The notes below the pieces were generated by a model. The model was given only the letters and a program-made list of their open reading frames with translations, was not told the DNA's origin and did no database searches. From Gracilinanus agilis (Eukaryota), in assembly GCF_016433145.1 (NCBI RefSeq), contig NC_058130.1, forward strand, positions 752,118,929 to 752,182,928: 64,000 bases of DNA, written 5' to 3'. The translations under genes were made by a program, and so were the position numbers. How positions within the stretch are numbered: the stretch's first letter is position 1; every line of letters starts with the position of its first letter. This document shows positions 1 to 43,697 of this stretch, piece by piece.

Positions 1-560
1 CGGAGCTGGGGGAGGGGGGTGCCGGGGATGCCGGGGCCGCCGCTGCCCGGAGAGGGGGGCGGCTTTTTTCACGGCGTCCCCCCCCCCATCGGCGGGCGAC
101 TCGGCGAGGGCCCCTGCCGGCGGCTTCGGGGAGCGGCTGGCGGCCGCTCCGCTGACCCGAGGGTACGGGTGCGGGTGCGTGTCTGGGGGGGCACGCCGCG
201 GTGGGGCCCGGGAGCGCCGCGAGCCGCCGGGCCGTGCAGAGCCCCGGCACTCGGGGCCGGAGCCGGAGGTGGGGGTGGGGGTGCCTAAGTAGAAGCAGCT
301 GGGCTGGGGCGAGGGGGCCCGAGTTTGGGAAGGGACGTGTGTGAGGGTGCTCGCATGTGCGTGTGCAAACAGCAACCGGCGAGCCCGGCACGGAAAAGTA
401 GACACAGTTAAAAAAAAAGCACGTGTGCAAAAGTGTGAGCGTGTGTCTGTGAGTGTGTGTTTGGGGGGTCCAGGAACACTCGTGTAGGAGTCGGTGGTCC
501 GGGAGAAAACCGGCGGAGAGGGGGTGTGATGGAAGGAGGATCCGTGTGTATGTGGGTGGA
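1..560. promoter_or_regulatory. CpG island, 3' part of the CDK2AP1 promoter / intron 1 island
   Basis: Very GC-rich with dense undepleted CpG (e.g. cggcgggcgactcggcg, gagcgccgcgagccgccgg). It lies upstream of CDK2AP1 exon 2; the MSYKPNL-type exon 1 was not found, so it is inferred to lie just before base 1. Confidence 0.75.
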
Positions 561-1895
561 GGAGCCGGCTCTGGGGTGCACGTGCTTTCTTAGGGGCTTT
601 GGGGAGAGACATTGCCCTGCTCTCCCTTCCCCGGGGTTGCAAGAAGAGGTTACATCTTGTCTCCCACGGATGAGGAACTGGCTCCATCATTTCCTGTGCA
701 GGGTTGGCCCACGGGTCTGGGGGAAGCGGGGAGGAGGGTGGGCAGGCACTAAAGTTTGGAAGATCCCCCCCAGTGGCCCCTTCTGGCTCCCCAGGTGGAT
801 CCGGGGGACCCTAGGCCAGAGAGGGCTCTGAAAAGGAGGGGGCGGTCTGAGGACCAGATACCCCCTTCATAGGGGGGCTTCTGCCTTTCTGGTGCCAGTG
901 TGAGAAGACTTCAGGTCTGGGGAGTAAGAATTGGGGAGGGGAAAGGGTGGAACCCAAGAAGCCTGGGTGTGAGTCAGCTGGGCTGGGGGCTCTCTCCAGG
1001 GTGGGGGGGGAGGCTGAGCTCCAGCCCTGCTCACTCCTCCCCCCCTGAACTCTTCCCCCTTCCTACACCCAGGCTGGAGTGGGGGTAGAATGCCGGGGTG
1101 GGAACCCCCTTGGGGGTGCGGAAGGAAAGAGCCCCAGATGGGGCCACGTCCTGTGGGGGTAGGGCGGCTGGCTCCCTGGGGATGACTTTGACAGGTGAGG
1201 GTGCTGCCCAGGTCAGCCCCCATGGTTCACCAGGTATGGGCATGTGGTTGAAGGACAAAGAGAAAGTGGCCACCATGTTCCCCTCTGTGAGCCCGTCACT
1301 AGCTCCTGCCTCCCCCTAGGAAGACAGAGGCAATTGAGCTTCCTTTCTTTGCTGACTCTCATTCAAGGTTTTTTTTGGGGGGGGAAGGGTAGCAGGACCT
1401 CTAGGATAATGGTCCCCAGTCCTGCCCGTGGTGCCCTGCAGAAGGCTCTGTGTGCAGAGGCCAGGAGGGTGGAGGAAGGGGCTTGGGGAGCTGCTGGACC
1501 CCAGGAGCTCCCCAATTCTGTGACTCTGTGACTTGCCCCATTTCCCTCCAGGACCTCATGTTTCCTTCTCCTGCCTCCCGTGTGGATGGCCAGAGGCCCC
1601 CAGCCCACAAACGACCCTTGTCCTTTTTGGGGGTGCCTCCTTCCTGCCCATCCCGGGGTCCCGCTCGGTCACAATCCCCATTCTTCTCCCCTGCCATCTG
1701 CATCCAAGATGGACTCTCTTTCCTCCTCCTCTCTCCTCTCTCCCTCTCCTGTCATTATCCCTCACACACCAGCCCTGCCTCCTGCTAGTAGGAATGCCAG
1801 CCCGTGGCCTAAGGCCAAGAGAGTTAGACAAAGCCCGAGTCCTCCGCTCGCACATCTCACACTCCCGGTGACGTGACTGCGGCTTCAGCTCAGCC

Positions 1896-1948
1896 CCCTT
1901 CCCTTCCCTTCCCTTCCCTTCCCTTCCTTCCCTCCCTGCCCTCCCTTC
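1896..1948. repeat. (CCCTT)n low-complexity tract
   Basis: ccccttcccttcccttcccttcccttcccttccttccctccc. Confidence 0.85.
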
Positions 1949-3194
1949 GCAGCTGCAGCAGCCACCTCCACAGGGGCTCTGCCCCCCTTTCTGGACACTG
2001 CCTCTGCCCTCCCCCCCGGGCTTGGCTGGGAGCGGACCTCCCTCTTGGGAGGCAGCCAGGACCCCAACTGGCCCTGTGGGGGTGGGTGGGAGGCCAGTCC
2101 TGGGGCTGGCTCTTTGTTTGGGCCCGAGGGGAAGGGGGGAGCAGGGGGCGGGCACAGCTCCCTCCTGCCCTGAAGATTTTCCTGTCCTTTGCCAACCCCT
2201 GTTTGGCTCCTGAGCCCTCCCAGAAATGCTGCGTCTGCCTCACACAGCGCTTCATTGTCTGGGATTTTCCAGAGAGGCTGACGTGGAGTTCAGGGATTTC
2301 TTGGTTTTCACTCTCTTCCCATCTTGACCCCCTCCCTGCCTCCCTGCGCCTCCCCCGCACATCCCTCGGGGTCATTCCCTTTCCTGGCCTTTCCTGGCCG
2401 CCGCTCATTGTTCTGAGGTCAGGGGCCCCCCAGGAGCCAGCCTCCATCCCCACGAGGACCAGGCACGAAGAAGCCAGCCTGTTCGCTGCTGCCCTTTCCC
2501 TGGGACAGAGGATTCCGGGCACTCCTGGTGGCAGGCCTGCCGAGAGCTCCGAGCTTCTCCCTGGCCACTGCCTGCCCACCCCGGCCTGGAAAGGGGGGCC
2601 ACAGGCCAGCGAGCGCCCGGCTGGGGCTTCCTTTGACAAATCCAGGTCCCCGCCTGGCCCCTGCCCCTGAGTGGGGAGCGGGGTGGGAGGAGGGAGAGGG
2701 TGGCCGGCTCTGTGGCCCTCAACTGCCCAGGGGCCACCCGGCCGCCATCCACAAGCCTGCTGTCAGGTTCACACGGCAGCGGCTGTTTCTCAAACTCCTA
2801 CTGTGTGCCAGGCGCTGTGCCCGCACACGTGGGGAGGAGGGAGCTGGGAGTTCCCAACTTTCCTCTCCCCTCAGTCCTGAGAGCCTGACAGGGGCTAAGA
2901 AGAAGGGAGGTGCAGGGACGGGGAGAAGAGAGGAAAAGAGGGCCGTCCAAAGACCCCCAGCCTCCTCTTCTCCCACGGAGCAGCCAAAAGGGAGTCGAGC
3001 CTCCCCACACCGGACCCTGTTCCTGGCCCTGGCCCTGCTCTCCCCCAGCAGTCTAGGGGAAGGAGACGGGGCCCAGCCCGCTCCCAGCCTTGGGGAATTC
3101 TCATTCCAGAGTCGAAAAGTTTGGCACTTTCAGGAACTTCCTTCATTCTGTCTCCTAGACCTCACCCCTTGCTTACCTGCACCCCCAGAGGCCT

Positions 3195-3435
3195 GCTGGC
3201 TTTCCTTCACGACCCCCCCCAACAGCTAACACTTATATGGCAGTTACATATACTATGAACCAGACTTTACATGATTATCTCATTTTATCCCCTACCAGAG
3301 GGGTGCCAGTATTCCCATTTTATAGATGAGGAAACCGAGGCAAACAAGTAAAGTGACTTGCCCGGGGTCACACAGCGAGTAAGGCTCTGAGGCTGGACTT
3401 GAACTCCAGCCCTAGTGCCTCCAGGCCCAGTGCTT
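3195..3435 (-). mobile_element. MIR/core-SINE
   Basis: Core motif cccattttatagatgaggaaaccgaggc...aagtgacttgcccggggtcacacagc. Confidence 0.8.
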
Positions 3436-3503
3436 TATCCACTGCCCCATCTACCCATACTCCTTCACCCGTAGTAGGTGCTTCGTGGATGCTTCTTGAA
3501 TGA

Positions 3504-3550
3504 ATGAATGGATGGATGGATGGATGGATGGATGGATGGATGGATGGATG
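3504..3550. repeat. (GGAT)n microsatellite
   Basis: gaatggatggatggat...ggatg. Confidence 0.95.
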
Positions 3551-6049
3551 CTTTCTTTCATAGTCTAAAGTTTGCCAGTTTTCCCCACAACAGTCTCACA
3601 AGGGAAGCTATGTAAGTAGTATTGTCTCCATTTTGCAGACGAGGACAGTGAAGCTTTCAGAGTTTCGGGATTTGTACATCTCTGAGGCTGGATTTGAACC
3701 CAGGTCTTTCCACCTGAGATGAATGTTTGAGATACCCTACCCTTGATGGCCACTTTTTTTTTTAAACCCTTGTTTTCTGTCCTAGTAACAACTCTTAAGA
3801 CAGAGGGCAGGGCCTAGGGACTGGGGCTGAGTGACTTGTCCAGGGTCACACAGTCAGGAAGTGCCTGAGGTCAGCTTTGAACCCAAGACTTCCAGGTCGG
3901 ACACTCTATCCCCTGAGCCTCCTCACTGTCCCTACAAAGGCCGCCTTGGGAGCTGAGAAGGGAAATTCTTTTCTCTTTCCATCGTAGGAGAGCCACCCTG
4001 CTAATAATGAGGCTGCCGTCCCCTCCCAGACGGGCACCGCTGGGCGGGGGGCTAGCAGGAAGCTGCAGCTGCTCAGGCTGGCCCTCTGGCCCGAGTGCCC
4101 CGAGAGGAGCCCACGGGGCTGCTTTGAGACCACCGAGCTGATGAGAAGGGAGATAGCGAGGCTCCTGTTCATTGGGCCGAATGCCAGCGGGCAGCTGACA
4201 CGTGGGAGCAGGAGAGGCAGCCTGGGGCCACGGAGAGAGAGCCTCGCTGTGGGCTCTCAGCAGCTCCCCTGCTGCCCCTCTGAGGCTTTGTGGGTTTAAG
4301 GAAAAAAAGAAAAGGGGGAAAGGGGGTTCCACTGGAACGTCTCCAGAACCCCATCCGATTCTCTGTACTCTCCCCATCTTGAACTTTGCTGCCTCCCCCC
4401 TCAACGCCCCCCTCCCCTTTCCCCCATGTTCTTCTCCGGGCCAGCACTAGCACTGGCACCGGCACCAGCCCAGGGCCGAGCCCAACTCTGCAGAGGCCGC
4501 TGGGTGTTGTCGGGAGCAGGTCTGTGGGTGGCTGCCCTGGCTTCTCCCCAGAGGAATAGGTGCATTCTCCATGGTTGCTGCTGCTTGTGATTCTGTAGGA
4601 CATCCCTCCCCGGCTGGCGGGGGCCCACTCACAGCTCCATTATGGGGGTCCCACAAAGGCTCCCTCCCTGGCCCATCCTGGAAAGGGGGCTCTGGAGGCT
4701 CAGGATGGGCTGTGGATGGGAGGCCTCGGTGGGGACCCACAGGGCTGAGCCAACCCGCTTTTAGTGGCCCTGCTGGGTGGGTCCCTTCTTGTTCTGGATA
4801 GTGGAAAGAGAGCTGGATCTGGAGTCAAAGGATCTGAGTTCAAATCCTGTCTTTGACACTTAACTACCGGTGTGCTCTTACAGCACTTCATTTCACATTT
4901 CGGGGGCCTCCGTTGCCTGATCTGTAAGCAGGGTGGTGTGTGTGTGGGGGTGTGGGATGTCGCTAAAGTCCCTTTTAGCTCTGAATGCCAGGATTCCCCA
5001 CGTTCCCCAGACTCTGCCTGTCAGCCTTCGCTTTCTTTAGGAGGAGATCCATCAGGGCTGATGAAGGCCAAGGGAGGTTCTGGACAGAAGCCCCAGGAGA
5101 GGTTCCGGAGAGGCCTCTTTCCCCAGGCAGGGCTTTCCTGGTGGCTCTTCCCAGTGCCTGGACCTTTCTGGGGCTGGGGGGGATCCTGGAAAATTGGTTC
5201 TGGCATGAAGGGGTTGGGGAGGAGGAGGCTGGAGGAGCCACAGGGCACAAAGGGTCCAGGGTCCTCTTTGATGTCTTTACCGGCTCTCTCCTGAGAATGG
5301 AAGTGACACCCCCACTTTTTTGTCACATTTTATCAAAGGGTTGTCAAAATAAATAGAATGCAATTTGGGGGGTGGGAAGGCATTCCCATGGAAGGGGTCC
5401 CGAAGAGCTTCCTAGAGGAGGTGCTTGCACTCAGCTGAGCTTTGAAAGAAGCTGGGGATTCTAAAGGAATAGAGAATTATGCAAAGGCTTGGAGGTGGGA
5501 GATGGAGTCTTGAATGGAATGGAGTCATTTTGGCTGTGCTGGGGGTGAGACAGGCCTCCCCTCTTCCATCCTCTCAGCTCAGCCTTTTTTTTTTAAACCT
5601 TTACCTTTTGTCTTAGAGTTGATATTATTGGTTCCAAGGTCAGATTTGAACCCAAGATCCCCTGTCTCCAGGCCTGGTTCTATCCACTGAGCCACCTGGC
5701 TGGCCCTTAGCCTCCTGCTTTGGCCCAGGGCCTGTGAACCAAGCTAGCGCTCCTTGGCTTGAGGAAGGCAATGGTGACCCTCCTGGAGAAGGAAACCTTG
5801 GGGCAGGAGGCCAGGTGTGGGAGGAGCTGGGACTCCCCAGGCCAGGAGCAATGCCTGCCCCTTCTCTCCGCCTCCCCACTGCCCAGATCAAATGGGCTTC
5901 TGTGCTCGCCACACAGGAGGGGCTTAATCAGCTCGTTTCCTCCCTCCTGCGGAATTTGGCTCTCTAGATCTGTCCTTGTAGGGCAAAGGAGGGCGCCCTG
6001 GATAGAGCGCCGAGATAGGAAGACGCATCTTCCTGACTTCATATCTGTG

Positions 6050-6195
6050 CCAGCCGTGTGACCCTGGGCAAGTCACTTCACTCTGCCTCAGTTTCCTCAT
6101 CTGTAAAATGAGCCGGAGAAGGAAATGGCCAGTGACTTTGGCAACAAAACCCCAAATGGGGTCAGGAAGAGTTGGACAGGGCTGAACAACAACAA
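6050..6195 (+). mobile_element. MAR1/MIR-type marsupial core-SINE fragment
   Basis: Core gtgtgaccctgggcaagtcactt...gtttcctcatctgtaaaatgag plus tail ctggagaaggaaatggc...gggtcaggaagagttggaca...ctgaacaacaac. Confidence 0.75.
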
Positions 6196-7622
6196 AATTT
6201 CTTTTCTCCTTCCTCCTCTTCTGTTGAGCCTTCTAGACACATTTCTGTTAAATACTCTCCAGTTTCCCAGTTTTTTCTTCATATACAACCTTCCATCTCT
6301 CACCTCCACTCCTTTGCACAGGCAGCCTCCAGACTCGCAATGCCCTCCCTCCTCAGCGCTACGTGTGTGCCATTTGAGGCTTTCTGCCACCTCTCTGTGG
6401 CACTTTGTAACCTTCCCAACATCTAACAGGCTGCCCCCTGCCACGACTCCGCCTCTGCTTCCCTGTGTGCCAGGCTGTTTGCTCCCCCAGAAGGTACACT
6501 CCGCACGGGGAGGGCCTGCTGGGTTTTACTGCGTGCCCAGCACGTGGGTGCCTCGGACGGATGTAGGAGGCACTTAACGGGCTGGCCGAAGGGCTAATCA
6601 GGATGAAGATAGTCCAGAGGAGCGAGGGGGCCGGGAGGCCATGGAGAGGGGCGCCCCTCGGCTTCTGGGGGGTCAGAGCTTTCTTTCCCCTTTCCCTTCT
6701 CTCTGAGAAGCCGGGGCAGAAGAGTGAAGAGGGCCAGGCCATGTGCTTCAGTGACTTGCCCAGGGTCACCTGCCAGGAAGGGTCTGAGGCCAGCTGGGAG
6801 CCTCCTGGTCTCCGGCCGGCTCTCTCCCCACCGAGCTGCCCCTGAAGTAGATCTTGGATGTTTTTGCTGGAGACGGCTGGCAGGGGAGGCCGAGAGGCCA
6901 AAGAGTCCGTGTCTTTGGGTCGACCCCAGGAAGCTTTTCTGACTCGTGTCCCTCTGGCGGAGGCCCAGGGAGAGGCCTCGAGGCTGCCAGGGGTGCTTGG
7001 GGGCTGGCGGGGGCTGGGAGCAGAGTCACCCCGACTTATTGGTGGGGGATTAGATGAAGCGCCTGAGAGAAGAGGGCCCCAGAGTGGGAGGACCTCTCCC
7101 GTCCAGCTGTGCCCAGGCCTGCCTCCCAGATAGAACCCCTGCTTTCTGTTAGGGTTCACCTCGGGGGCCACCTTCAGCAAAAGGCCTTTCCTGCTTCCTC
7201 CCTCCTCCGCAGTGTCCTTCCATAATTGTTTTCTTTTAGAGGCAGTGAGGTGGCTCAGTGTTTAGGGTTCTGGGACTTGAGTTCAAATCCTGCCTCAGAT
7301 AGTTACTAGCAGTGTGACGCTGGGCAATCACTTATCTTCTGTCTGCCTCAGTTTTCCTGTTTGTAAAATGGGGATCATAATAGAATCTCCTGCCTGGAGT
7401 TGCTGCAAAGATCAAATGAGAGAATATCACCCAGTTTCCAGAGTGCACCCTTAGGGCTGCATCCCCCCTCTAGGGGTAGACGCCTTGAAGGGAGGAACAA
7501 TTGTCCTTTTGTTTTTTAAACCCCCAGTTTTGAGCACAGTCCTGGGGCACATTCAGACATTGCTGTCTCATCCCATGTATCCATGACCCCATTTGGGGTT
7601 TTCTTGGCAGAGATACTGGAGT

Positions 7623-7883
7623 GGTTTGCCATTTCCTTCTCCAGCTCATTTGACATATGGGGAAACTGAGGCACACAGGGTGAAGGGTCTTGGCCAGGGT
7701 CACACAGCTGGTTTGCCATTTCCTTCTCCAGCTCATTTGACATATGGGGAAACTGAGGCACACAGGGTGAAGGGTCTTGGCCAGGGTCATACAGCTGGTT
7801 TGCCATTTTCTTCTCCAGCTCATTTGATAGATGGGAAAACTGAGGCAGACAGAGAGAAGGGACTTGGCCAGGGTCACACAGCT
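7623..7883 (-). repeat. Tandem triplication of an 87-bp core-SINE segment
   Basis: ggtttgccatttccttctccagctcatttgacatatggggaaactgaggcacacaggg... begins at 7623, 7710 and 7797; seen as a 29-aa repeat in the ORF track. Confidence 0.92.
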
Positions 7884-8103
7884 AGTGACTCTCTAATGGC
7901 CAGATTTGAACTCTGAGTGATGTCTTTCTGGCTTCAGGCCCCGTGTCCTCTCCAGCCACCCCTCTTGGTCTTTGGAGGTGCTTGTGTAGGCCTGTGAATT
8001 GAATAGTTGACAGAATGGCTGGCCATAGGCTTGGAGGCAGGAAATAGAAATGTTTATTCAGGAAGTAGAAAGTAGAGTGTAGGATGTGTGGTGGGAAGGA
8101 AGG

Positions 8104-8140
<37 letters not shown>
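8104..8140. repeat. (GCAA)n microsatellite
   Basis: aagcaagcaagcaagc...aagca. Confidence 0.95.
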
Positions 8141-8141
<1 letters not shown>

Positions 8142-8989
8142 TTCTCCAGGGCTCTGTGCTGGGCAGCCCGAGCAGGAGCTCCTTCCTGCCCTCCTAGGAG
8201 GGACCTGTTAGGGAAGGGAGGCCGGGGAGGCTATCTTGGCTGGAGGGGTGGCTGGTGCGGCGCCATTCCTAGGGAGTTTCCCAGACTGGTCTGAGAGGAA
8301 AGGGACGGAGCTGAGGCGCAGACTCACCTGGGCCAAAGACTCACCTGGGCAGGGCAGAAGCGGCAGAATGGGAGGGGAGGCCACTTGCATGGAGAGGAGG
8401 CCGAGGGACTCTGCAGAATGCCTGCTTTGAGGGCAAGAACTGTTTTCTGTCTCTAATGGCTCCCACGTATATCGTGCAGCTACTGTGCGCTGTAGAGTGA
8501 GCATTTCACTTGATCCTTAGTAGTCCCAGACTTCTGTTTTACAGATGAGGAAATGGAGGCAAACAGGTAAAGTGAGTTGCCCAGGGTCGCATGGCCAGTA
8601 AGGATCTGCAGTCAAATTTGAACTCGGGTCTTCCTGACTCCAGGCCGGGTGCTCTATCCGCTGTGCCACCTAGCTGACTCAGTAGCTCTGTACCAAGCGC
8701 AGTGTCTGGCATAGGGCAGGCATTTTGATACATGTTGTTGAATTGGATTCAATTGGCCCGATTCTTTAGGAGATAACCGGAGAACACTGACTTGGGGGCC
8801 GAGTGCTTCCCACCTCGCTTTCATTCAGGCTCCGGTTTCTCTTGCCCATTGAATGAGACCTTTTCTCATGACCTGATTTCACTCCCGGGTAACTAATCTA
8901 CTGTGGTTGCCTTTGGGGAAAAAAAATCAATCTTAACTTAAATACCAAAAAAATCATTTCCATACATGGAGCACAAGAGAAAATGGGGA

Positions 8990-11800
8990 CTCTCGAGAAA
9001 ATGGTGAATCTCCATTTCATACTGCTGACTTTTTTAATATAATATTTTATTTTTCCCAATTACATATCACAATCATTTTAAACATTCCTGTCCCAAGATT
9101 TCAAGTTCCAAATTCTGTCTTTCCCCCTCCCTAGTTTGCACATACGCGATCTCCGAAAACATATCTCCACGTTCAGACCACTTATATAGATTCTAAATTA
9201 CAACCTTTACTTTCAAAGCTGCCCTGCTTTACTGTGCTTCCTTCTTAATTTCCTTTGGCATCTGGGAATTTCAAAAATGGAACAATGGCCCTCTCTTTGT
9301 ATCACTACTATCACACCTCCTCCACATTTCCCCTATAAAACTGAGAAGGGAGGGGGAAAAAAGAACCTTTTAAAGCAAAACGGAGCAGTGGCCACGTTCC
9401 AAAATGTTTGTTCCCTTCTGCACATTGTGTCCACCCCTTCCCTCTCAGGGGGTGCGGAAAATGCTTCATTATGGGTCTCTCAAGTAATAATTGACCACGG
9501 CGTGGCTCAAAGTTCTTTGGTCTTCTCAAATTGGTTTTCCATCCTAGAAGAAATTGTTCTCCTGGTTCTACCCGCTTTACTCGGTGCCAGCTCACAATGC
9601 CCACAATTCCCAGAATTCTTCTCATTCATAATTTTTTTACATTGCACTTGGGTTCTGTTGCATTCATATGCTAGTTTGTTCTGTCATTTCCTAATTGTCT
9701 AAAAGGCAGTTTCTATGGCATTTTCCTTAGAGTCCGGTTATTTTCTTTATCCCAGCTCCCTATGGCTTTAAGTCAGCCCATAGAGGTCAGAAAGCTTCTT
9801 TTGCTTGTGACTATTCCCTCCCCAGGATCATCCTCCCTCTTAGCCATTCTCCTCTTTTTTTTTTTTTTTTTTTTTTTAAATTTATTAAACCCTTAACTTC
9901 TGTGTATTGGCTCCCAGGTGGAAGAGTGGTAAGGGTGGGCAATGGGGGTCAAGTGACTTGCCCAGGGTCACACAGCTGGGAAGTGTCTGAGGCCGGATTT
10001 GAACCCAGGACCTCCTGTCTCTGGGCCTGGCTCTCAATCCACTGAGCTACCCAGCTGCCCCCTCTCCTCTCTATCTTGGTTTATTTCCCTTTTAGGTTTG
10101 ATTATTTCCACCCCAAACTCTATGTGCATGTGTGTGATTGTGTGTGCATGTTTGATCTTCCTTTGTTCATCTTAGAAGACAGTGACATTCCTCTGACACT
10201 TGCTCTGACCTCATATTTAGATAACTTCTTTTCATGCGGTTATGGGAAACATAAGTTCCATTCCCTCTTTCCCTTATTAGCCTTTCTTCTCTTTTCCTCT
10301 TCAAACCCTCAGAATAGATACAATGAACTCCCAGGATCCCTTTTTTCTTTTTTCTTTCTTTTTTTTTTACCCTCCCGAATACCCTTTGAAGTTTCCCTTA
10401 AGGGATACTTGTTTCTTTTCTCTCTATTAGGAGGTTAGTGTGGTGTCACCATATTGTTCCTTCCAGTGACTCAAATACATTTACCTTTATAGATTTCTTT
10501 GGCCTCTTGTGTTTGTATTTCAGAATTCCTACTCAGTTCTAGTCTCTTCATCAGAAATGCTTGAATGGCCTCTATTCCATTAAAGATCCTTTAAGAAAAA
10601 ATCCTGAATGAGGATTCTCAGTTTTGTAGAGTCCATCATTCTAAGTTGTAAGCCTGTATCTTTTGCCTTTTGGATGATTATATCCAAGCTCTCCTCTCAT
10701 TGTTTGTTGAAGATGCCAGCTCTTGTGTGATACTGACTGCTTACTTGGTGCTTGAACTTTTTTCTGGATAATTGCAATATCTTTTCTTTGTTATAGGAAC
10801 TCTGGTTTTTGATCATGACATTCTTGTAACTCTTCCTTTTGGGGGGATTCTGTTCATAAGGTGATTTGGTGAATTCCTTCTATCTTCATTTTGTCCTAAC
10901 AGTTCTGATCACTTGTCATTTATGATTTCTTGAAATATTGTAAAAAGGGTTTAAAAAAAAAGAATTATTTTTTGGGAAGTACACTGATTCTTAAATTTTT
11001 TTTTCCTTGATCTGATTTCCAGTCTTTTGGGTTTATTCTAATAGTTCTTGCTCTCTCATGGAGTCAAGTCATTGATTTATGTTTGGCTTTTTCTAGTATT
11101 CAGAGATTCCATTTCCTGGATAGAGTTTACCACTTTGTCGTCTAGGTAGTTTATTCTGCTAGTCCATCTAGAACTTTTGAAAAATGTTAAATCTCTTGCT
11201 TCGTTTCTTCTAAGAATTTGTGTTATCCTCGTGGAAAATCTGCTTTTTCCTTTTAGTCTCTGCCTGAAGTTGTATTCGCTCCTTTTGGGAGATCTATATG
11301 TTTGTGATCATTTTTTATACTGGCTGGTGTTTCTTTGCTTTACTTATGTTTTTAGCTTTAGCTCCTGATTTTGAGCTTTTTGCCAGGGCCATAGTTCATT
11401 CCCTGCTCTGCTTTTGGGTGGGTTGCTTGGCCTTCTGTGGGTCCACCCCAGGTCCCTCGCACCCTTCTCTAATTCCCCAAGTCAGGGCCCTTGGATTGTT
11501 GAGCTTCAGCTGCTTCATGTTCAGGAACCTCCTCTAGAGTCTCAGCACAGAGTTTTAGGTGACTCCGAGCCCCTCGGATGTGAGCGCCACTCTGATCACT
11601 ACCGGCTACTGCTCCCCAGCAGCTTCCAAGGTGCCCAACCTGGGCCTTTTTCTGGGGAACCTTCTGCTCATGCTGTCTTTGGACTCAGCCACACAGACTA
11701 TGATGTGTGTCCTGTTTTTGGAGACGGGAGATGTTAACACTGGCCGTGTTGGAAGGGTCACTTTTCCTATTGCCCATGACCTTTTGGCTGATGTGTGATA
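8990..11800 (-). mobile_element. Old, fragmented LINE-1 (3'UTR/ORF2-end-like then ORF1-like sequence), interrupted by a SINE
   Basis: T-rich antisense L1 texture: ttttatttttcccaattacat...aagttccaaattctgtctttccc (L1 3' end) and ttttgccttttggatgattatatccaagctctcc (resembles marsupial L1 ORF1 antisense). Boundaries approximate. Confidence 0.55.
9856..10062 (-). mobile_element. SINE1_Mdo-like tRNA-derived SINE
   Basis: Poly-T then the reverse complement of the ggggcagctgggtagctcagtggattgagagcc...ggttcaaatc...acacagaagttaagggttt consensus; inserted into L1-like sequence. Confidence 0.9.
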
Positions 11801-12684: not shown

Positions 12685-12782
12685 GTGGGAGTGTCCACTC
12701 TCCTTCCGCTAGCATGGCGGCATCTACCCAGTACCGACAGCTGATCAATGACTACGGACCCCCATCTCTAGGCTATACCCAG
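12685..12782 (+). CDS. CDK2AP1: CDK2AP1 coding exon 2 (98 bp)
   Basis: Acceptor ttccttccgaag|GT; reads (x)[32 protein letters not shown]; donor CAG|gtaagg. Matches recalled human CDK2AP1 [32 protein letters not shown]. Starts phase 1, ends phase 0. Confidence 0.96.
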
Positions 12783-13351: not shown

Positions 13352-14123
13352 ACTCATGTTTTGGATTCCCTGGGGCTCCTGTGGGACCAAGAAAGGACTG
13401 GGTTGGAATTACCTGCTCCCAGATTCATGGGTTGGAATGGATGGGAAAGGGCTTATCTCCGTGTTGGCCAAGATGGCAGGAGAGAAAATAGGGCATGTTA
13501 GGCCTCGGTTCTGTGCTCTTCAGCAGACATTTATTAACAAAAGGCCAGAGGCTTTCCTTCCCCATCTGGCACGAGGCACCGTAGGCTTGAGAAATGACGC
13601 CAGGACAGACGTTTCCAGTTCATGCTAGAGTTCAGGGACTTGGAGAGAGCAGCAAGGACCAAGACAGAGCCGTCCAGCTGTCACTGTTCCTCTTGGATTG
13701 CCCGCCAAGGAGTCTCCCGAGTCAGTGGTGTTCCCTAGGAGTGCTAAGGCCTGGATGCCCACGTGTGTGGACCTTGAAGAGCTCTTGGTTCCTTTGGATA
13801 GAAGAAGACTGGCGACATCTTTGCCAGACTCACCCAGCAGGAAAGGTGGCCTTTGGGTCCCCACGTCTAGTACCTTCTTCCAAGAACAGGAGCCGGGTGT
13901 CTGGTAGCCCCTGCCGTTGGCTGGGCCTTGGGCTCCCCAGCTTGAGAAGATCTCGCCCCGCTCTGGGGGGCAGAACATGATTCCAGAGGCCGAGACACTG
14001 TTATGTGTCCAGGCCAAGAACCCAGCCATTCAGAGGTGGGGCCATTGTTCCTCGGAACATAGAAGCCCACGGGCTGGTGGGGTCAGGGCTGACCTCATGC
14101 CCCGCCAAGCCTTCCTGTCTCAG

Positions 14124-14555
14124 GAGGAGAAGCAGGCGAGAGTTAGAGAGCGGGACCGGCTTAAAAAGCGTCGCAAACGGGAGGACAGCCTGAAAAGGAG
14201 TCTGGAGAGGCAGAGGAATGCGGAGGCCATGAAACGCCGGCGGGAAGATGAGAAGGAGAGGGAGAAGGAACGCAGGAAGGACAGAGAGGCCAAGAGGAAG
14301 CGCAGGGAGAATGTGGAGGAGAGGCAGAAAGAGCGGGAGAAAGACCGTGAAGCCAAGAAGAGGCGGAGGAGGGAGAAGAAAGAAGAGAGGGAGAAAGCAC
14401 TGTCCGAGGATGTGGCTGCCCTGATGCCTCTATGGGACATGGAGGAGGAGGAGGAGGAAGAGGAAGAGGAGGAGGAGAGGGAAGGGAGAGACAAAGAACA
14501 AACGTCTGTGTTCCTGGGAACCCCAGCATCGCTGCTCTGGGTGCTTGCCTTGTGA
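14124..14555 (+). CDS. Putative alternative terminal exon of CDK2AP1 encoding 4x21-aa basic/acidic repeats plus poly-Glu (may start at 13941)
   Basis: Pyrimidine acceptor gccttcctgtctcag|GAG at 14123/14124 is phase 0, matching the exon-2 donor. Frame open from 13908 to TGA 14553-14555; AATAAA at 14629-14634. Protein-level 21-aa periodicity with mixed codons. No transcript evidence available. Confidence 0.55.
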   Translation, partial: EEKQARVRERDRLKKRRKREDSLKRSLERQRNAEAMKRRREDEKEREKERRKDREAKRKRRENVEERQKEREKDREAKKRRRREKKEEREKALSEDVAALMPLWDMEEEEEEEEEEEEREGRDKEQTSVFLGTPASLLWVLAL

Positions 14556-14628
14556 TACTCTTTGTAATTGTGGGGGGAAAAAAGGTTTATTTTTCAGAAG
14601 GGCATCATGGAGGGGCGGAGATGGGGCG

Positions 14629-14634
14629 AATAAA
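14629..14634 (+). terminator. Candidate intronic polyadenylation signal for the alternative CDK2AP1 terminal exon
   Basis: ggcgAATAAAaatgcc, 73 nt after the TGA, followed by GU/U-rich ttccattgtccgtctgtcgtcttt. Confidence 0.45.
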
Positions 14635-15370
14635 AATGCCTTCCATTGTCCGTCTGTCGTCTTTAAAAACAATTGTATGGCCATTTTTACAGCCTGCTCC
14701 TTCCCGCTCAGCTCTGGTCACGGGTCTCTAACGTGTGGGTGGGTGCCTTGCCCCAGCTCCTGGGTCCTCACTCGAGGGCGAGATCCCGCTCTTACTCCCT
14801 GTGGGAGATCGGAACTGTGCCCCTTGGCATCGTGGTAATGCCATTGATCTACCCTAGGGGAGATGTTAGCACAGAGCGGTTTGGAACTTGGCTCAGGGTC
14901 GCAGAGATCCCAAAGGGTAGCTAGGGTCACAGGCTCGTGGACGAGACCCGGAAGGGCACCTGGGAGGCCGTCTGGTCCAACCCTCTCATTTTTCAGATGA
15001 CAGAAGTGACTCGCCTAAGGTCACCCAAATAATAAATGACTGGGCCGGAACTCGAAGCTGCCTTCTTGACTCCCACCTCCTGGGCCAGTGTCTGGTTTCC
15101 CTTTGTGCCCTTCCCCGCAGCCCACCGAAAGCTCTGGAGGCCATCCCTGATGTCGTGTCAACCCAAGTGCTTCAGCCCCTGAGCCGCTGTTGGGGCTGGG
15201 GGCTTCCGGGGCTGGGATCAGGGTGCCCATCCCTCGCTACTGGACATCACCCTGCCTTTGGCAGCCGCCAGGGCACGATACCACCCAGCTGGTGGCCTCG
15301 GCTTGCCCCAAGAGAGGTGTCAAGCTCTGGATTTCTCCAGTCATTCTAATAAACTTCTCTCTGACTCTAG

Positions 15371-15497
15371 GGTACAGGGAGCAGCCAGGTACCCCAAAGC
15401 AAATATGCAGAACTTCTAGCTATCATCGAAGAACTAGGGAAAGAGATCAGACCCACATATGCAGGGAGCAAAAGCGCCATGGAGAGGCTGAAACGAG
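15371..15497 (+). CDS. CDK2AP1: CDK2AP1 coding exon 3 (127 bp)
   Basis: Acceptor ttctctctgactctag|GGT; [42 protein letters not shown]+G; donor G|gtaagt. Near-identical to recalled human sequence; phases 0/1 are consistent. Confidence 0.97.
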
Positions 15498-16024
15498 GTA
15501 AGTGGTGGGTGGGCTCCGGGCACAGGCTCAAACACTGCCATTTACTTGGGGGGCTTCAGAATCAAAATGTAAGAGCAGAAGGAATGTAGGATCAGATCTT
15601 CACAGCTACAAGGGACCCTTAGACCAACTCCCTTATTTTACAGATGAGGAAACTGAGGCACAAGGGTCACACGCATAGTGACAGAGCTGGGATTAAATCT
15701 CAGGTCCTCTGTTGTTATCTTTAGCATCATTGCTGGCCAAGGAGGAGGGGACCTGTTCTCCCATTAACCAGCGAGGAATTCCAGGTCCATAGTCTCAGAA
15801 CCGGAAGGGGCCTTAGAAGGGAGACCACATGACCTAGAGGGTACAGTGCCAGATTTGGATTTCAGAAGACCGAGGTTGAGATACCCGTTTCACTTGTTGT
15901 AGCCTCCATTTCCTCATCTGTAAAACGGGAATAATAAGGGCACCTACTTCTCTTTCCGGGATGTTGTGAGGTTGTGAGGATCAGATGAGATCATATTTGA
16001 AATGGGCTTTTTATTGTTGTTGTT

Positions 16025-22488: not shown

Positions 22489-22674
22489 AAGAAAAATAGG
22501 ATTGACAACCACCTGTTGGGGGAGTTGAGGCCCAGTCTTTTGGATGGGCCAGTTGACACCTTTAATTTCTTTCTAAGACTGGGGGTTCAAGGTAGGGCCT
22601 TAACATCCTCTCCTGTTTGTTTGAAATCCATCACATGAATCCACTCATTTCCATCTTCTTGCTTCCTCTTCCAG

Positions 22675-22742
22675 GCATCATTCATGCTCGAGGATTAGTC
22701 CGGGAATGCCTGGCAGAGACTGAACGGAATGCAAGATCCTAG
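22675..22742 (+). CDS. CDK2AP1: CDK2AP1 last coding exon (68 bp including stop)
   Basis: Acceptor cttcctcttccag|GC; (G)[21 protein letters not shown] with TAG at 22740-22742, identical to the recalled human C-terminus. Confidence 0.97.
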
Positions 22743-40844: not shown

Positions 40845-41030
40845 GGGGGAGGAGGGAGGGAGGAAGGAAGGAAGGAAGGGCTGAGAAAAAAGGATTAGGA
40901 AAGGGAAGAAAGTTGGGAAGGAAGAGAAGCAGGGAAAGAAGGAAAGAGGAAAGGAAGGAAGGAGAGGAGAAGGAAGAGAGAGAGGAAGGAGGAAAGGGAG
41001 GAGAAAAATAAAGAGGGAAGGAAGAATAAA
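40845..41030. repeat. Purine-only (GA-rich) low-complexity tract next to the promoter
   Basis: Near-continuous G/A run (ggaaggaagg, gagagaggaagg). Confidence 0.9.
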
Positions 41031-41314
41031 ATATCTTTTCTAGGCTAGGCCCCTATCAACTATGAGGTCCTGGGAAGGGCAGGCACGTCGGGGCATCCAG
41101 TGGAGCTCCCGGGGGAAGCCAAATCTCAGAGCCCGCGGCGGGGTCTCCTTCTCCTCCAGACCATGATAGACTCCTATTCACAGCTGAGGGAAATTGAGGC
41201 CCTCCGAGGTTCTGCTTCCCCGGCACGGCCGCGTGCGGGGTCCATGAGAGATAGACCTTGGCCGGAACGACGCAGAGGCAAGAGGATGGCCGCGCTCGCA
41301 CTGGTGTCTCTTAC

Positions 41315-41400
41315 CTGGGCCCAAGAAGGAGCAGCCAGGAACACTCTATAGGATAAGGAGACCAAACATCCACAGGCAGAGGAAAAAAAAAAAAAAAAGA
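41315..41400 (-). other. MTRFR: Putative non-coding exon 1 of MTRFR (5' end approximate)
   Basis: Strong minus-strand donor CAG|gtaaga (plus strand tcttac|ctg at 41314/41315) inside the CpG island. A non-coding first exon is required because the coding exon has an acceptor 8 nt before its ATG. Confidence 0.5.
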
Positions 41401-41639
41401 CCGGAAGAGCATGCGCCTACGCATGCGCTTTCCTTTCTCCGCCTCCCACCACCTTGACGTTTTTCTTTGGTACATTGCGCAAGGGAGCCGTTGTTAGTCC
41501 CGCCTACGTGATGGGAAAGAGTACGAGCAGGCCAATCAGAGAGGGCGGGAGGGGAGGAGCCCCGCCTCTCTCCGGCTGGGTTCTACACACCCCACAATCA
41601 ATCCGCCGTGAAGCGGGGAGTGGCACCTGCGCGGGCGCG

Positions 41640-41788
41640 CGCCTCCCCTCCGCCGTCCCTTCCCCCCCGCCCCTTTCCAACGCCCGAGCGGCCAATTGCC
41701 AGCGGGGCACGGGGTGCACGCACTCGGTTTTTAACGGTCGCGCTGGGCAGCTCGCCTTGCCCTTACCATCGGCTAGGGCGCTCCCCAG
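41640..41788 (+). other. MPHOSPH9: Putative non-coding exon 1 of MPHOSPH9 (5' end approximate)
   Basis: Donor CAG|gtatgg at 41788/41789 inside the island; the next exon has a clear acceptor at 43531/43532. An alternative donor (ct|gtgagt) near 42010 is also possible. Confidence 0.4.
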
Positions 41789-43697
41789 GTATGGGGGCCG
41801 TGAGCTCTAGGAGGTTGGGGACAGGGGGGCCGTTCCCCCAAGGGCACTTGAGATGGCTAAGAGTTGTCGAAGCCCCTGGCAGCTTGGGGAGACCCGCTAA
41901 GGGAGGGGGAGGGGGCGGGGGCAGGGCGGAGCGTTTGCTGCGGCAGTCCGGCCTCCAGTCTGCCACCTCATGACAGGGGTTGTGGGGGTGGGGAGGCGGG
42001 GCCTGTGCCTGTGAGTGACGTTTCTATGGCTCAATTGCAAGTCGACTTCCGAGGGCGGGGCTTGTTAAGGAACCTCCTGGAAGTTCCGTGTCTTGGCTGG
42101 CTGTTAGGTTCTTGGCTGCGGGGTCGAACGGGAGCTGTCAGTGGTTTGCCTGTACTCTTCATTCTTTTTCCCTTCCCTCCTCGTTCGGACTTGCTCCTGG
42201 CCGCGTCTCTTTTAGCTTTAGTAGCTAGCCGTCTCTAGCTCGGCCATCCATGATGGGTGACCCAGGCTGGTGGTGACAGTTGGGGCCATTCCATTCCCCC
42301 TTCCCACTTTGCGTCCGTGAACAGTCTGTGGGCCAGTAGGGGATGGCCTCAATTCCACCCTCCTCCCACCCCCAACCCCCATCCTTTTCGCCGAATGAGG
42401 CAAAAGCTGATTAACCCGTGTTCTGTGACTGAGAAAGGGGAAAACCCACACCAGTCCGCACCGAATCCCGGATTTATTTTGCAGTATCACGATTTCCAAT
42501 CGGGCTAATTTAGACAGATTCCACATTGAGAGCCTGGTGCTTCGGTTTAATTTATTTTTTTTCCTTTCTGACTAGAAAAGCGCTTTTGAATTTCAGCTTG
42601 GACCTACATCTCCATCCACTGCATCAGGATTACCTCACTGGGAAAGGAATAGCCTGAAATGCAAATCTGTCTTCTCAGGAAGCTTGTTTTCCAGATAGAA
42701 ATCCGACGCACAAGAGGCAAGCTGATTTGAATTCAGATTATTTTATTCTTTTGGCTAGTGTAGATGCTGTCTGGACTTTTTTTTTCCCCTTCTGTAACTA
42801 TGGTGTCATTCAGCTGGTGTGACTGCCGAAATCTCTGACGAGAGAAATCTACTCAGCTGGTTCTATTCCCCCTTTCATTCTTATATTTGTGTCTTTGGGA
42901 AATGTCCTTTTTATGGACTGGTGTTCTTAATCATGTCCCCTTTATGAATAGGTCTCGAGTTGGAAAATAGTAGAAAAAAAATTTGGGTAAAACGTGTAGG
43001 ATAAATTGCAATAATTTGCATTTTTAATCCTAGGTTTTAAATTTTGATATTTTCTGTTTGTGTGTGTTTTAAGGACCTGAGGTTATTTGAAGGAGGCTGA
43101 TTGTTTGAATTGTTTGAATATCAAGTAGAGTATTTATATGCTCTTGGGTATGTAGAACAAATAGCCTTTGATACAGAAATAGTTCTAAATCATAGAGCTT
43201 AATTAAAGAAACCAAATGAGTTACTAAACAAAAGTTATATTGGTGTTTTTGCAAACAAGTATCCATGTACAAAACCACAGACAGCAAAATGAGTTACTTT
43301 TCCATGTGTCCTGGTCCAGCTCATGTTAGTGTTTTTTGTTATGTAACAGAATTGTGTCTAGGAGATAGATTTTTTTTTTAGAAAATTCAGTAATATCACT
43401 AAAAAAGTGATGTCATTTTACAAGTCCATCTTTTGATATGTATTTATGTGCAAAAATTAAAATATTTCCAGTCATGGAAGAACAGGAGATATATTTAGTA
43501 GCTTTTAAGTGTTTTCCATTCATTTTTTCAGAATCTGTTGGAAGCTTAGGACTTTATGCTTCTGAATGTTAGGAACTGAAAATGTCCCTAGATGATGAAG
43601 TACCTGAAGATGAATCGGATTCAATTTCTTCAAAGAATGAAGTCAAGCTACTTTTTCAAATAAGAGAATGTAACCACATTCCTATTAGACATATACT

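Follow-up and report, generated by a model that had tools for sequence, protein, structure and literature searches.

A candidate alternative 5' coding exon with 21-residue basic repeats in intron 2 of CDK2AP1 in Gracilinanus agilis

Intron 2 of the CDK2AP1 gene of Gracilinanus agilis contains a long open reading frame (ORF), which raises the question of whether it is an exon and, if so, which end of a CDK2AP1 protein it would encode. The frame is located in a stretch of 64,000 nucleotides of contig NC_058130.1 (assembly GCF_016433145.1, positions 752,118,929 to 752,182,928 of the forward strand), referred to here as the window and numbered from its first letter. It is open, as previously noted, from 13908 to a TGA over 215 codons without a stop, and it lies inside intron 2, between the end of exon 2 at 12782 and the start of exon 3 at 15371; the canonical exons were located through tblastn searches with retrieved CDK2AP1 proteins, together with direct reading of the sequence. 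An earlier, sequence-only reading of this DNA interpreted the frame as a hidden terminal exon that, by alternative splicing and intronic polyadenylation, would give an isoform carrying four 21-residue repeats and lacking the conserved C-terminal domain. The analyses reported here agree with the existence of a coding exon and point to the opposite end of the protein: the segment 14097-14540, here called exon X, probably belongs, as its coding part, to an ancient alternative 5' exon of the gene. It most likely substitutes for the N-terminus of the protein and leaves the conserved C-terminal domain in place.

The best matches of the ORF among 5.8 billion proteins were automated RefSeq models annotated as CDK2AP1 isoform X1, including those of the tammar wallaby (XP_072456744.1; 71% identity, E 6e-61) and the koala (XP_020825896.1; 78% identity, E 2e-51). 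Cluster look-ups and an exhaustive HMMER profile search (1.84 billion protein representatives, 23 hits) brought further isoform X1 models: those of rat (XP_038945523.1, listed in UniProt TrEMBL as well), golden hamster, Phodopus, two Peromyscus species and Mastomys, and those of armadillo, rabbit, marmoset, platypus (XP_007665088.1) and echidna. In every one of these models the peptide of exons 3-4 (GTG[SN]...) directly follows a Lys/Arg/Glu-rich peptide, and PF09806 is recorded for most. Mapped onto the window, the models end their first segment at 14540 and continue with 15371-15499 and 22674-22739. The order exon 2, exon X, exon 3 is the same in the rat, Peromyscus, platypus and echidna loci. 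The homology to the X1-specific segments is significant, the hidden coding exon is regarded as genuine, and the question left by the sequence-only reading, whether an automated "isoform X" model already covers it, is answered in the affirmative for many mammals. Exon X is an ancient mammalian coding exon, present from monotremes to eutherians.

Both ends of the exon are conserved. The koala, armadillo and muroid rodent models begin at MPRQ, which corresponds to the ATG at 14097 of the window, and the wallaby model begins at an ATG lying farther upstream, for which the window has no conserved counterpart. In an alignment of 16 mammalian and bird sequences 21 columns are invariant, Met1-Pro2-Arg3 and 18 more within the first 41 residues, and conservation between mammals and birds extends over ATGCCCCG and the codons after it. 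The ATG at 14097, already considered as the possible start of a nested gene, is a plausible start codon, and most models start at MPRQ. At the other end, the statement that the frame contains no strong GT donor had passed over a GT at 14540/14541 (CTCTGG/GTGCTTGCC; slashes mark splice junctions), 12 nt before the stop. This donor is conserved almost base for base in the rat, Peromyscus, hamster-like and mouse-like genomes. Marsupial and rodents share TCTGG/GTGCTTGC, even though the coding DNA immediately before it cannot be aligned, and the koala and wallaby models pass to exon 3 at the equivalent TGG/GTGCTTGC (...[LI]W/GT).

Selection on the exon was followed at several distances. In a three-way alignment of the genomic loci of rat, Peromyscus and a hamster-like rodent, exon X is a gap-free block of 87-97% identity that reaches from about 67 nt upstream of the ATG to the donor, and the intron flanking it shows 40-80% identity with many gaps. 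The ratio of nonsynonymous to synonymous substitution rates (dN/dS, NG86) among muroid rodents was 0.11-0.16 when computed in the annotated frame, and each of the two remaining frames gave 1 or more. The window and rat, compared over their first 50 codons, gave a dN of 0.17 with saturated dS, and off-frame ratios of 1.2-2.5; across marsupial, rodent and a bird paralogue described below, dN for these codons was 0.17-0.21, again with dS saturated. Against wallaby, the window was 71% identical over 178 residues, with the repeat core best conserved, changes mostly conservative ones of the K/R type and indels in frame only. The ORF from Met to donor is retained in three marsupials.

The four Lys/Arg/Glu-rich units of 21 residues described earlier proved to be real. 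The mean BLOSUM62 self-score of the peptide at lag 21 was 2.3, lag 42 came second, and none of 1000 composition-preserving shuffles reached this value (their maxima over all lags averaged 1.42 +/- 0.14). The proposal that the period is better kept in protein than in DNA was also borne out: TRF found no 63-bp DNA repeat in the window and pairs of units are only 38-48% identical in DNA, with the exception of units 3 and 4 (71%), so that the period is a protein-level feature. In rat exon X the 21-residue periodicity is gone. Direct reading of the repeat region shows several K/R clusters of the classical nuclear localization signal type. AlphaFold2, run with a 16-sequence alignment, predicted one continuous helix over residues 9-139 (mean pLDDT 86). 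Such a helix might be of the single alpha-helix type, long, uninterrupted, rich in E, K and R and stable as a monomer, or might instead form a coiled coil or fold upon contact with DNA. Pfam scans of the ORF and its relatives returned noise only (Transformer, Piezo, ALMT; E>3), and the ESM Atlas feature search gave a best score of 0.82 to unnamed clusters, which was uninformative.

From these data we infer the following arrangement for G. agilis. Transcription would start a short way upstream of exon X and translation at the conserved Met-Pro-Arg-Gln, and the weak conserved donor would be joined in phase 0 to exon 3 at 15371. The product, of about 212 residues, would carry a module of 148 residues instead of the N-terminus of about 58 residues encoded by exons 1-2. 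Besides the four repeats this module would comprise a variable linker and a poly-Glu tract, with one long alpha-helix as its predicted fold; the C-terminal CDK2AP domain (PF09806) encoded by exons 3-4 would be retained. The module may add a nuclear or nucleolar targeting arm, or one binding nucleic acid or chromatin, to a protein that would still dock on CHD4/NuRD. About 85-100 nt upstream of the ATG can be partly aligned between the window and rodents. In-frame ORFs in this region lie in different frames, as compared by hand between the window-rodent alignment and a hamster-like ORF (P0011), and we read 14013-14096 as non-coding, either 5' untranslated region or promoter.

Several observations weigh against this arrangement. 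No CpG island or obvious promoter was detected upstream of exon X (CpG observed/expected 0.4-0.5), and the donor is weak in comparison with the consensus (no A at +4, no G at +5). Gnomon models can be partly ab initio, and three models (Myotis davidii, Myodes glareolus and Cricetulus) join exon 2 to exon X, in the form of a cassette exon. Between exon 2 and exon 3 the rodent Logan contigs (L001/L002 and L012-L018) match the genome colinearly, i.e., are unspliced; they had been considered as transcripts and were dropped, being uninformative on splicing. In monotremes exon X lies in the same intron with a strong donor and has lost the start Met, and platypus and echidna gave a dN/dS of 1.4 on 13 differences, with no visible constraint at the protein level. 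Many other eutherian copies have decayed through CpG-type loss of Arg (R to W, Q or C). Because of this monotreme ratio, the loss of Met and the eutherian decay of Arg, constraint on exon X must be regarded as lineage-dependent. In DNA, monotreme exon X (L021:17865-18260; L022:26590-26985) is 93-100% identical between platypus and echidna versus 82-91% for the flanking intron, which suggests, on small numbers, that constraint acts on nucleotides or RNA rather than on the protein.

Three other explanations of the same ORF were weighed. If it were a terminal exon, as initially proposed, the transcript would be cleaved after the AATAAA at 14629, and the protein, made either of exons 1-2 plus the repeats or from a nested mini-gene, would end in ...LLWVLAL-stop without the CDK2AP domain. 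The hexamer is indeed present 89 nt past the donor, an in-frame stop lies 4 codons past it, and the donor is weak; many unspliced rodent Logan contigs also carry the read-through ORF, but they may simply be genomic DNA. However, all of the 12 or more orthologous models splice on to exons 3-4 and keep PF09806, none of them ending in exon X. Rodent conservation stops right at the donor, and the read-through tails beyond it vary in length (4, 9, 9, 9 and 20 codons) and sequence. In the rat, Peromyscus, hamster-like, mouse-like and platypus sequences the interval from exon X to exon 3 contains neither AATAAA nor ATTAAA, and echidna has one AATAAA at about +136 past the donor. A conserved poly(A) signal together with isoforms ending in exon X was not found among the retrieved models, the four rodent genomes or platypus, and we regard intronic termination as very improbable. 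A cassette exon would use the exon 2 donor at 12782 with the acceptor 14123/14124 (LSQ/EEK), and the donor at 14540 with exon 3, so that about 139 residues, basic or acidic, would separate the canonical N-terminus from the C-terminal domain. Both of its junctions are in phase 0. The exon 2 donor reads CAG/GTAAGG in that phase, and the two CAG acceptors pointed out earlier, before 13941 and before 14124, are present and in phase 0. The pyrimidine tract and CAG are conserved in mammals and birds, L-S-Q is invariant, and the Myotis davidii (P0014) and Myodes glareolus (P0044) models use exactly the LSQ/EEK junction, that of Cricetulus lying a few codons upstream. These models nevertheless come from pipelines prone to ab initio prediction, most RefSeq models (koala, armadillo and six muroid rodents) begin at MPRQ, and an invariant Met-Pro-Arg upstream of the acceptor would be needless if the exon were only internal. 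We consider the cassette an unlikely explanation of exon X, although such a form may coexist with the one having its own start.

Exon X might finally be a non-functional relic, an old insertion or exonised fragment, purine-rich and T-poor, open by chance, spliced as noise and picked up by gene predictors. The monotreme ratio of about 1.4 with loss of the start codon, the many decayed eutherian copies, the lack of a Pfam domain in the scans and the failure to find literature on the isoform would all fit such a relic. It is difficult to reconcile with the frame-specific constraint and sharp conservation edges in rodents, with the low dN of the first 50 codons between marsupial, rodent and bird paralogue, and with a conserved donor and a Met-to-donor ORF kept in three marsupials, and is judged improbable. 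A retrocopy was ruled out, as no parent gene was found among the 1.84 billion representatives and the exon occupies the same intron in all three mammalian subclasses.

Homologues of the module were also found in a second gene. A bird sequence (MMPRKAFLSQKEKQARARERDMLKKRRRRQDYLKRS...) is about 46% identical to exon X overall and nearly invariant over the first ~45 residues, the homology between the window and the bird copy being limited to the ORF. On genomic contig L008 the bird module (3755-4240) lies 3.2 kb upstream of a large ADNP exon (7421-10555), 96-98% identical to passerine and shorebird ADNP; the bird module is also present at L003:7475-7930 and L007:174-575. RefSeq isoform X1/X2 models of bird ADNP (e.g., Calidris pugnax and Pithys albifrons) contain the module as an in-frame N-terminal extension (...RENER-ET-MFQLPV), and the transcript-like contig L007 shows the module-ADNP junction, the module being joined in frame to the exon that holds the ADNP start codon. 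In a Logan cluster of 880 members (P0096), a contig of 4977 nt encodes 1218 residues and must be spliced mRNA, since the corresponding genomic span is about 6.8 kb. The dN/dS of the bird module was 0.17 on 9 differences. Like exon X as proposed here, the bird extension begins at the same Met and is a 5' coding exon with its own donor. It differs in host gene, in donor position and phase (GAG/GTAAGG, codon 97, phase 1, strong) and in a less regular spacing of the repeats, and it extends the N-terminus of ADNP, whereas exon X would replace that of CDK2AP1. Given that the bird and mammalian donors differ, either CDK2AP1 and ADNP recruited the module separately or each adapted it. The C-terminal half of CHD4 is engaged by CDK2AP1 in NuRD and by the N-terminal part of ADNP in ChAHP (PMC9545347). 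A third, decayed copy with two in-frame stops (...ELKRRRK-stop-QHNLKRSLEQQKNMEAMR-stop-RE...) was observed at L019:4354-4690, from the bird run that also gave L003; this 13-kb contig contains no exon of CDK2AP1 or ADNP.

Only two of the 23 profile hits, P0071 and P0070, fell outside CDK2AP1, ADNP or decayed-copy loci (library-wide E 1.7e-4, 3 stretches), and both are Helitron-like proteins with DUF6570, a domain that in the RepHel ORF marks HLE2 (Helentron-type) Helitron-like elements (PMC11417382). P0071 starts with ten strict 21-residue repeats, N[LV]EITRALREDPEYAEQER[MI]K, and carries DUF6570 after them; in P0070 the repeats measure about 22 residues, and its truncated end gives a weak match to DUF6570. 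P0071 resembles exon X in the motif ER-x-[KR]-N-x-E-[AI]-x-R-x-x-R-E-D, in the strict period of 21 residues and in the position of the repeats at the protein N-terminus. Exon X departs from Helitron RepHel proteins in that Pfam detected no DUF6570, Rep or helicase in the window ORF. No transposable element termini are visible in the window, where no search aimed at such termini was made. The link to Helitron N-terminal repeats, suggested by the sequence-only reading as one to look for, obtained some statistical support, the module profile scoring 47 bits on P0071 against -17 +/- 3 for shuffles and a maximum of 13.5 in 300 unit-wise permutations that kept the periodicity; the other comparison did not bear it out, hhalign giving a probability of only 6.9% between the module and the Helitron-like repeats. 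We treat a transposon origin as a lead and not as a result. Helitrons also capture host fragments, and we therefore assign no direction to the transfer. With this in mind, we tentatively suggest, as a possibility that we hold doubtful, that the module might be an exapted N-terminal basic-repeat region, probably nucleic-acid-binding, of an HLE2/Helentron transposase, recruited in amniotes on two or more occasions as an alternative 5' coding exon, by CDK2AP1 on the mammalian stem and by ADNP in birds, giving NuRD and ChAHP a lineage-specific targeting arm. The host-transposase fusion preprint of Cosby et al. makes no mention of CDK2AP1, ADNP or Helitron. An environmental eukaryotic contig (L020:1116-1578; JGI 3300042601) was observed to contain MPRPRQLSQKERERRGKERDRVKK... 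followed by a tandem array with a 63-bp (21-residue) period, 5.2 copies long and interrupted by stops, with the remnant of a mariner-like transposase next to it on the opposite strand (2497-3268).

The repeats had also been compared with the STPR repeats of FMBP-1 and ZNF821, which they resemble as tandem, Arg/Lys-rich, helix-forming repeats of about 20 residues. STPR repeats are strictly of 23 residues with conserved Glu1, Thr/Ser2 and Arg9 (PMC4856987), and the units of exon X start with Q-E, D-S, D-E and N-V, without that signature. The Pfam STPRs model, which exists (PMC11417382), gave no match at E<=10, and a profile search of PDB chains, among which the FMBP-1 STPR crystal structures (PMC4856987) should be found, gave 0 hits at E<=10. 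Membership in this family is rejected on the period of 21 instead of 23 and on the absence of Pfam and PDB chain matches. A different comparison is provided by the deltaN isoform of Cdk2ap1, which is produced from an MT2B2 retrotransposon or other promoters (bioRxiv 10.1101/2021.03.24.436683). It shares with the proposed exon X form the use of an alternative promoter, an altered N-terminus and a retained C-terminal domain. Unlike it, deltaN lacks exon 1, its transcript being spliced to canonical exon 2, which supplies the ATG; the intron 2 exon plays no part. MT2B2 was discarded as an explanation of exon X, deltaN being a different event with its start in canonical exon 2.

Since exon X is already part of the automated annotation of sister species, its existence is not new. 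No paper on the exon X isoform was found in the searchable literature, isoform X1 being known from computed models only, and the pan-mammalian age, the strong constraint in rodents, the homology to bird ADNP and the similarity to Helitron-like proteins appear to be undescribed there. CDK2AP1 (DOC1) is, to our knowledge, the least understood subunit of NuRD, and its deltaN isoform is essential in mouse preimplantation development. If true, the swap of its N-terminus for a basic helical module of about 150 residues would represent an unstudied regulator of CHD4/NuRD targeting. With ADNP being a partner of CHD4 in ChAHP, the two recruitments would be explained either by a single remodeller being the target of exon shuffling or of the capture of a transposon domain, or by a striking coincidence.

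The features of the locus are collected in Table 1.

Table 1. Features of CDK2AP1 and exon X in the window. Slashes mark splice junctions.
Feature	Position	Strand	Details	Basis
Canonical CDK2AP1 exon 2	12685-12782	+	Ends in phase 0; donor CAG/GTAAGG	tblastn of CDK2AP1 models and sequence
Upstream phase-0 CAG acceptor, first base after it	13941	+	ggctccccag/; used by no retrieved model	Sequence
Stretch upstream of start codon	14013-14096	+	Candidate 5' untranslated region or core promoter	Partial alignability with rodents, differing frames
Exon X, coding part (candidate)	14097-14540	+	148 codons, MPRQAFLSQEEK...TPASLLW	ORF, homologues, mapping of models
Four basic 21-residue repeats	14121-14372	+	Motif ER-x-[KR]-[ND]-x-E-A-x-[KR]-x-R-R-E-[DN]	Periodicity test; AlphaFold2 helix
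Phase-0 acceptor, first base after it	14124	+	ccttcctgtctcag/; codons AFLSQ	Sequence, alignment, models
GGA/GAG trinucleotide run (poly-Glu tract)	14441-14477	+	Length variable among marsupials	TRF; alignment
Splice donor	14541-14549	+	GTGCTTGCC after ...CTC TGG, phase 0	Conservation in rodents; koala and wallaby models
TGA	14553-14555	+	Reached only with the donor unused; read-through tail VLAL-stop	Sequence
AATAAA hexamer	14629-14634	+	89 nt past the donor	Sequence
Canonical exon 3	15371-15497	+	Acceptor ctctgactctag/; donor GAG/GTAAGT	tblastn and sequence
Canonical exon 4	22675-22742	+	Stop TAG	tblastn and sequence

Elsewhere in the window, GC-rich stretches were observed at 1-8000 (GC 0.51-0.66) and at about 41001-42000 (GC 0.62). 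The promoter and exon 1 of CDK2AP1 are probably located within 1-8000.

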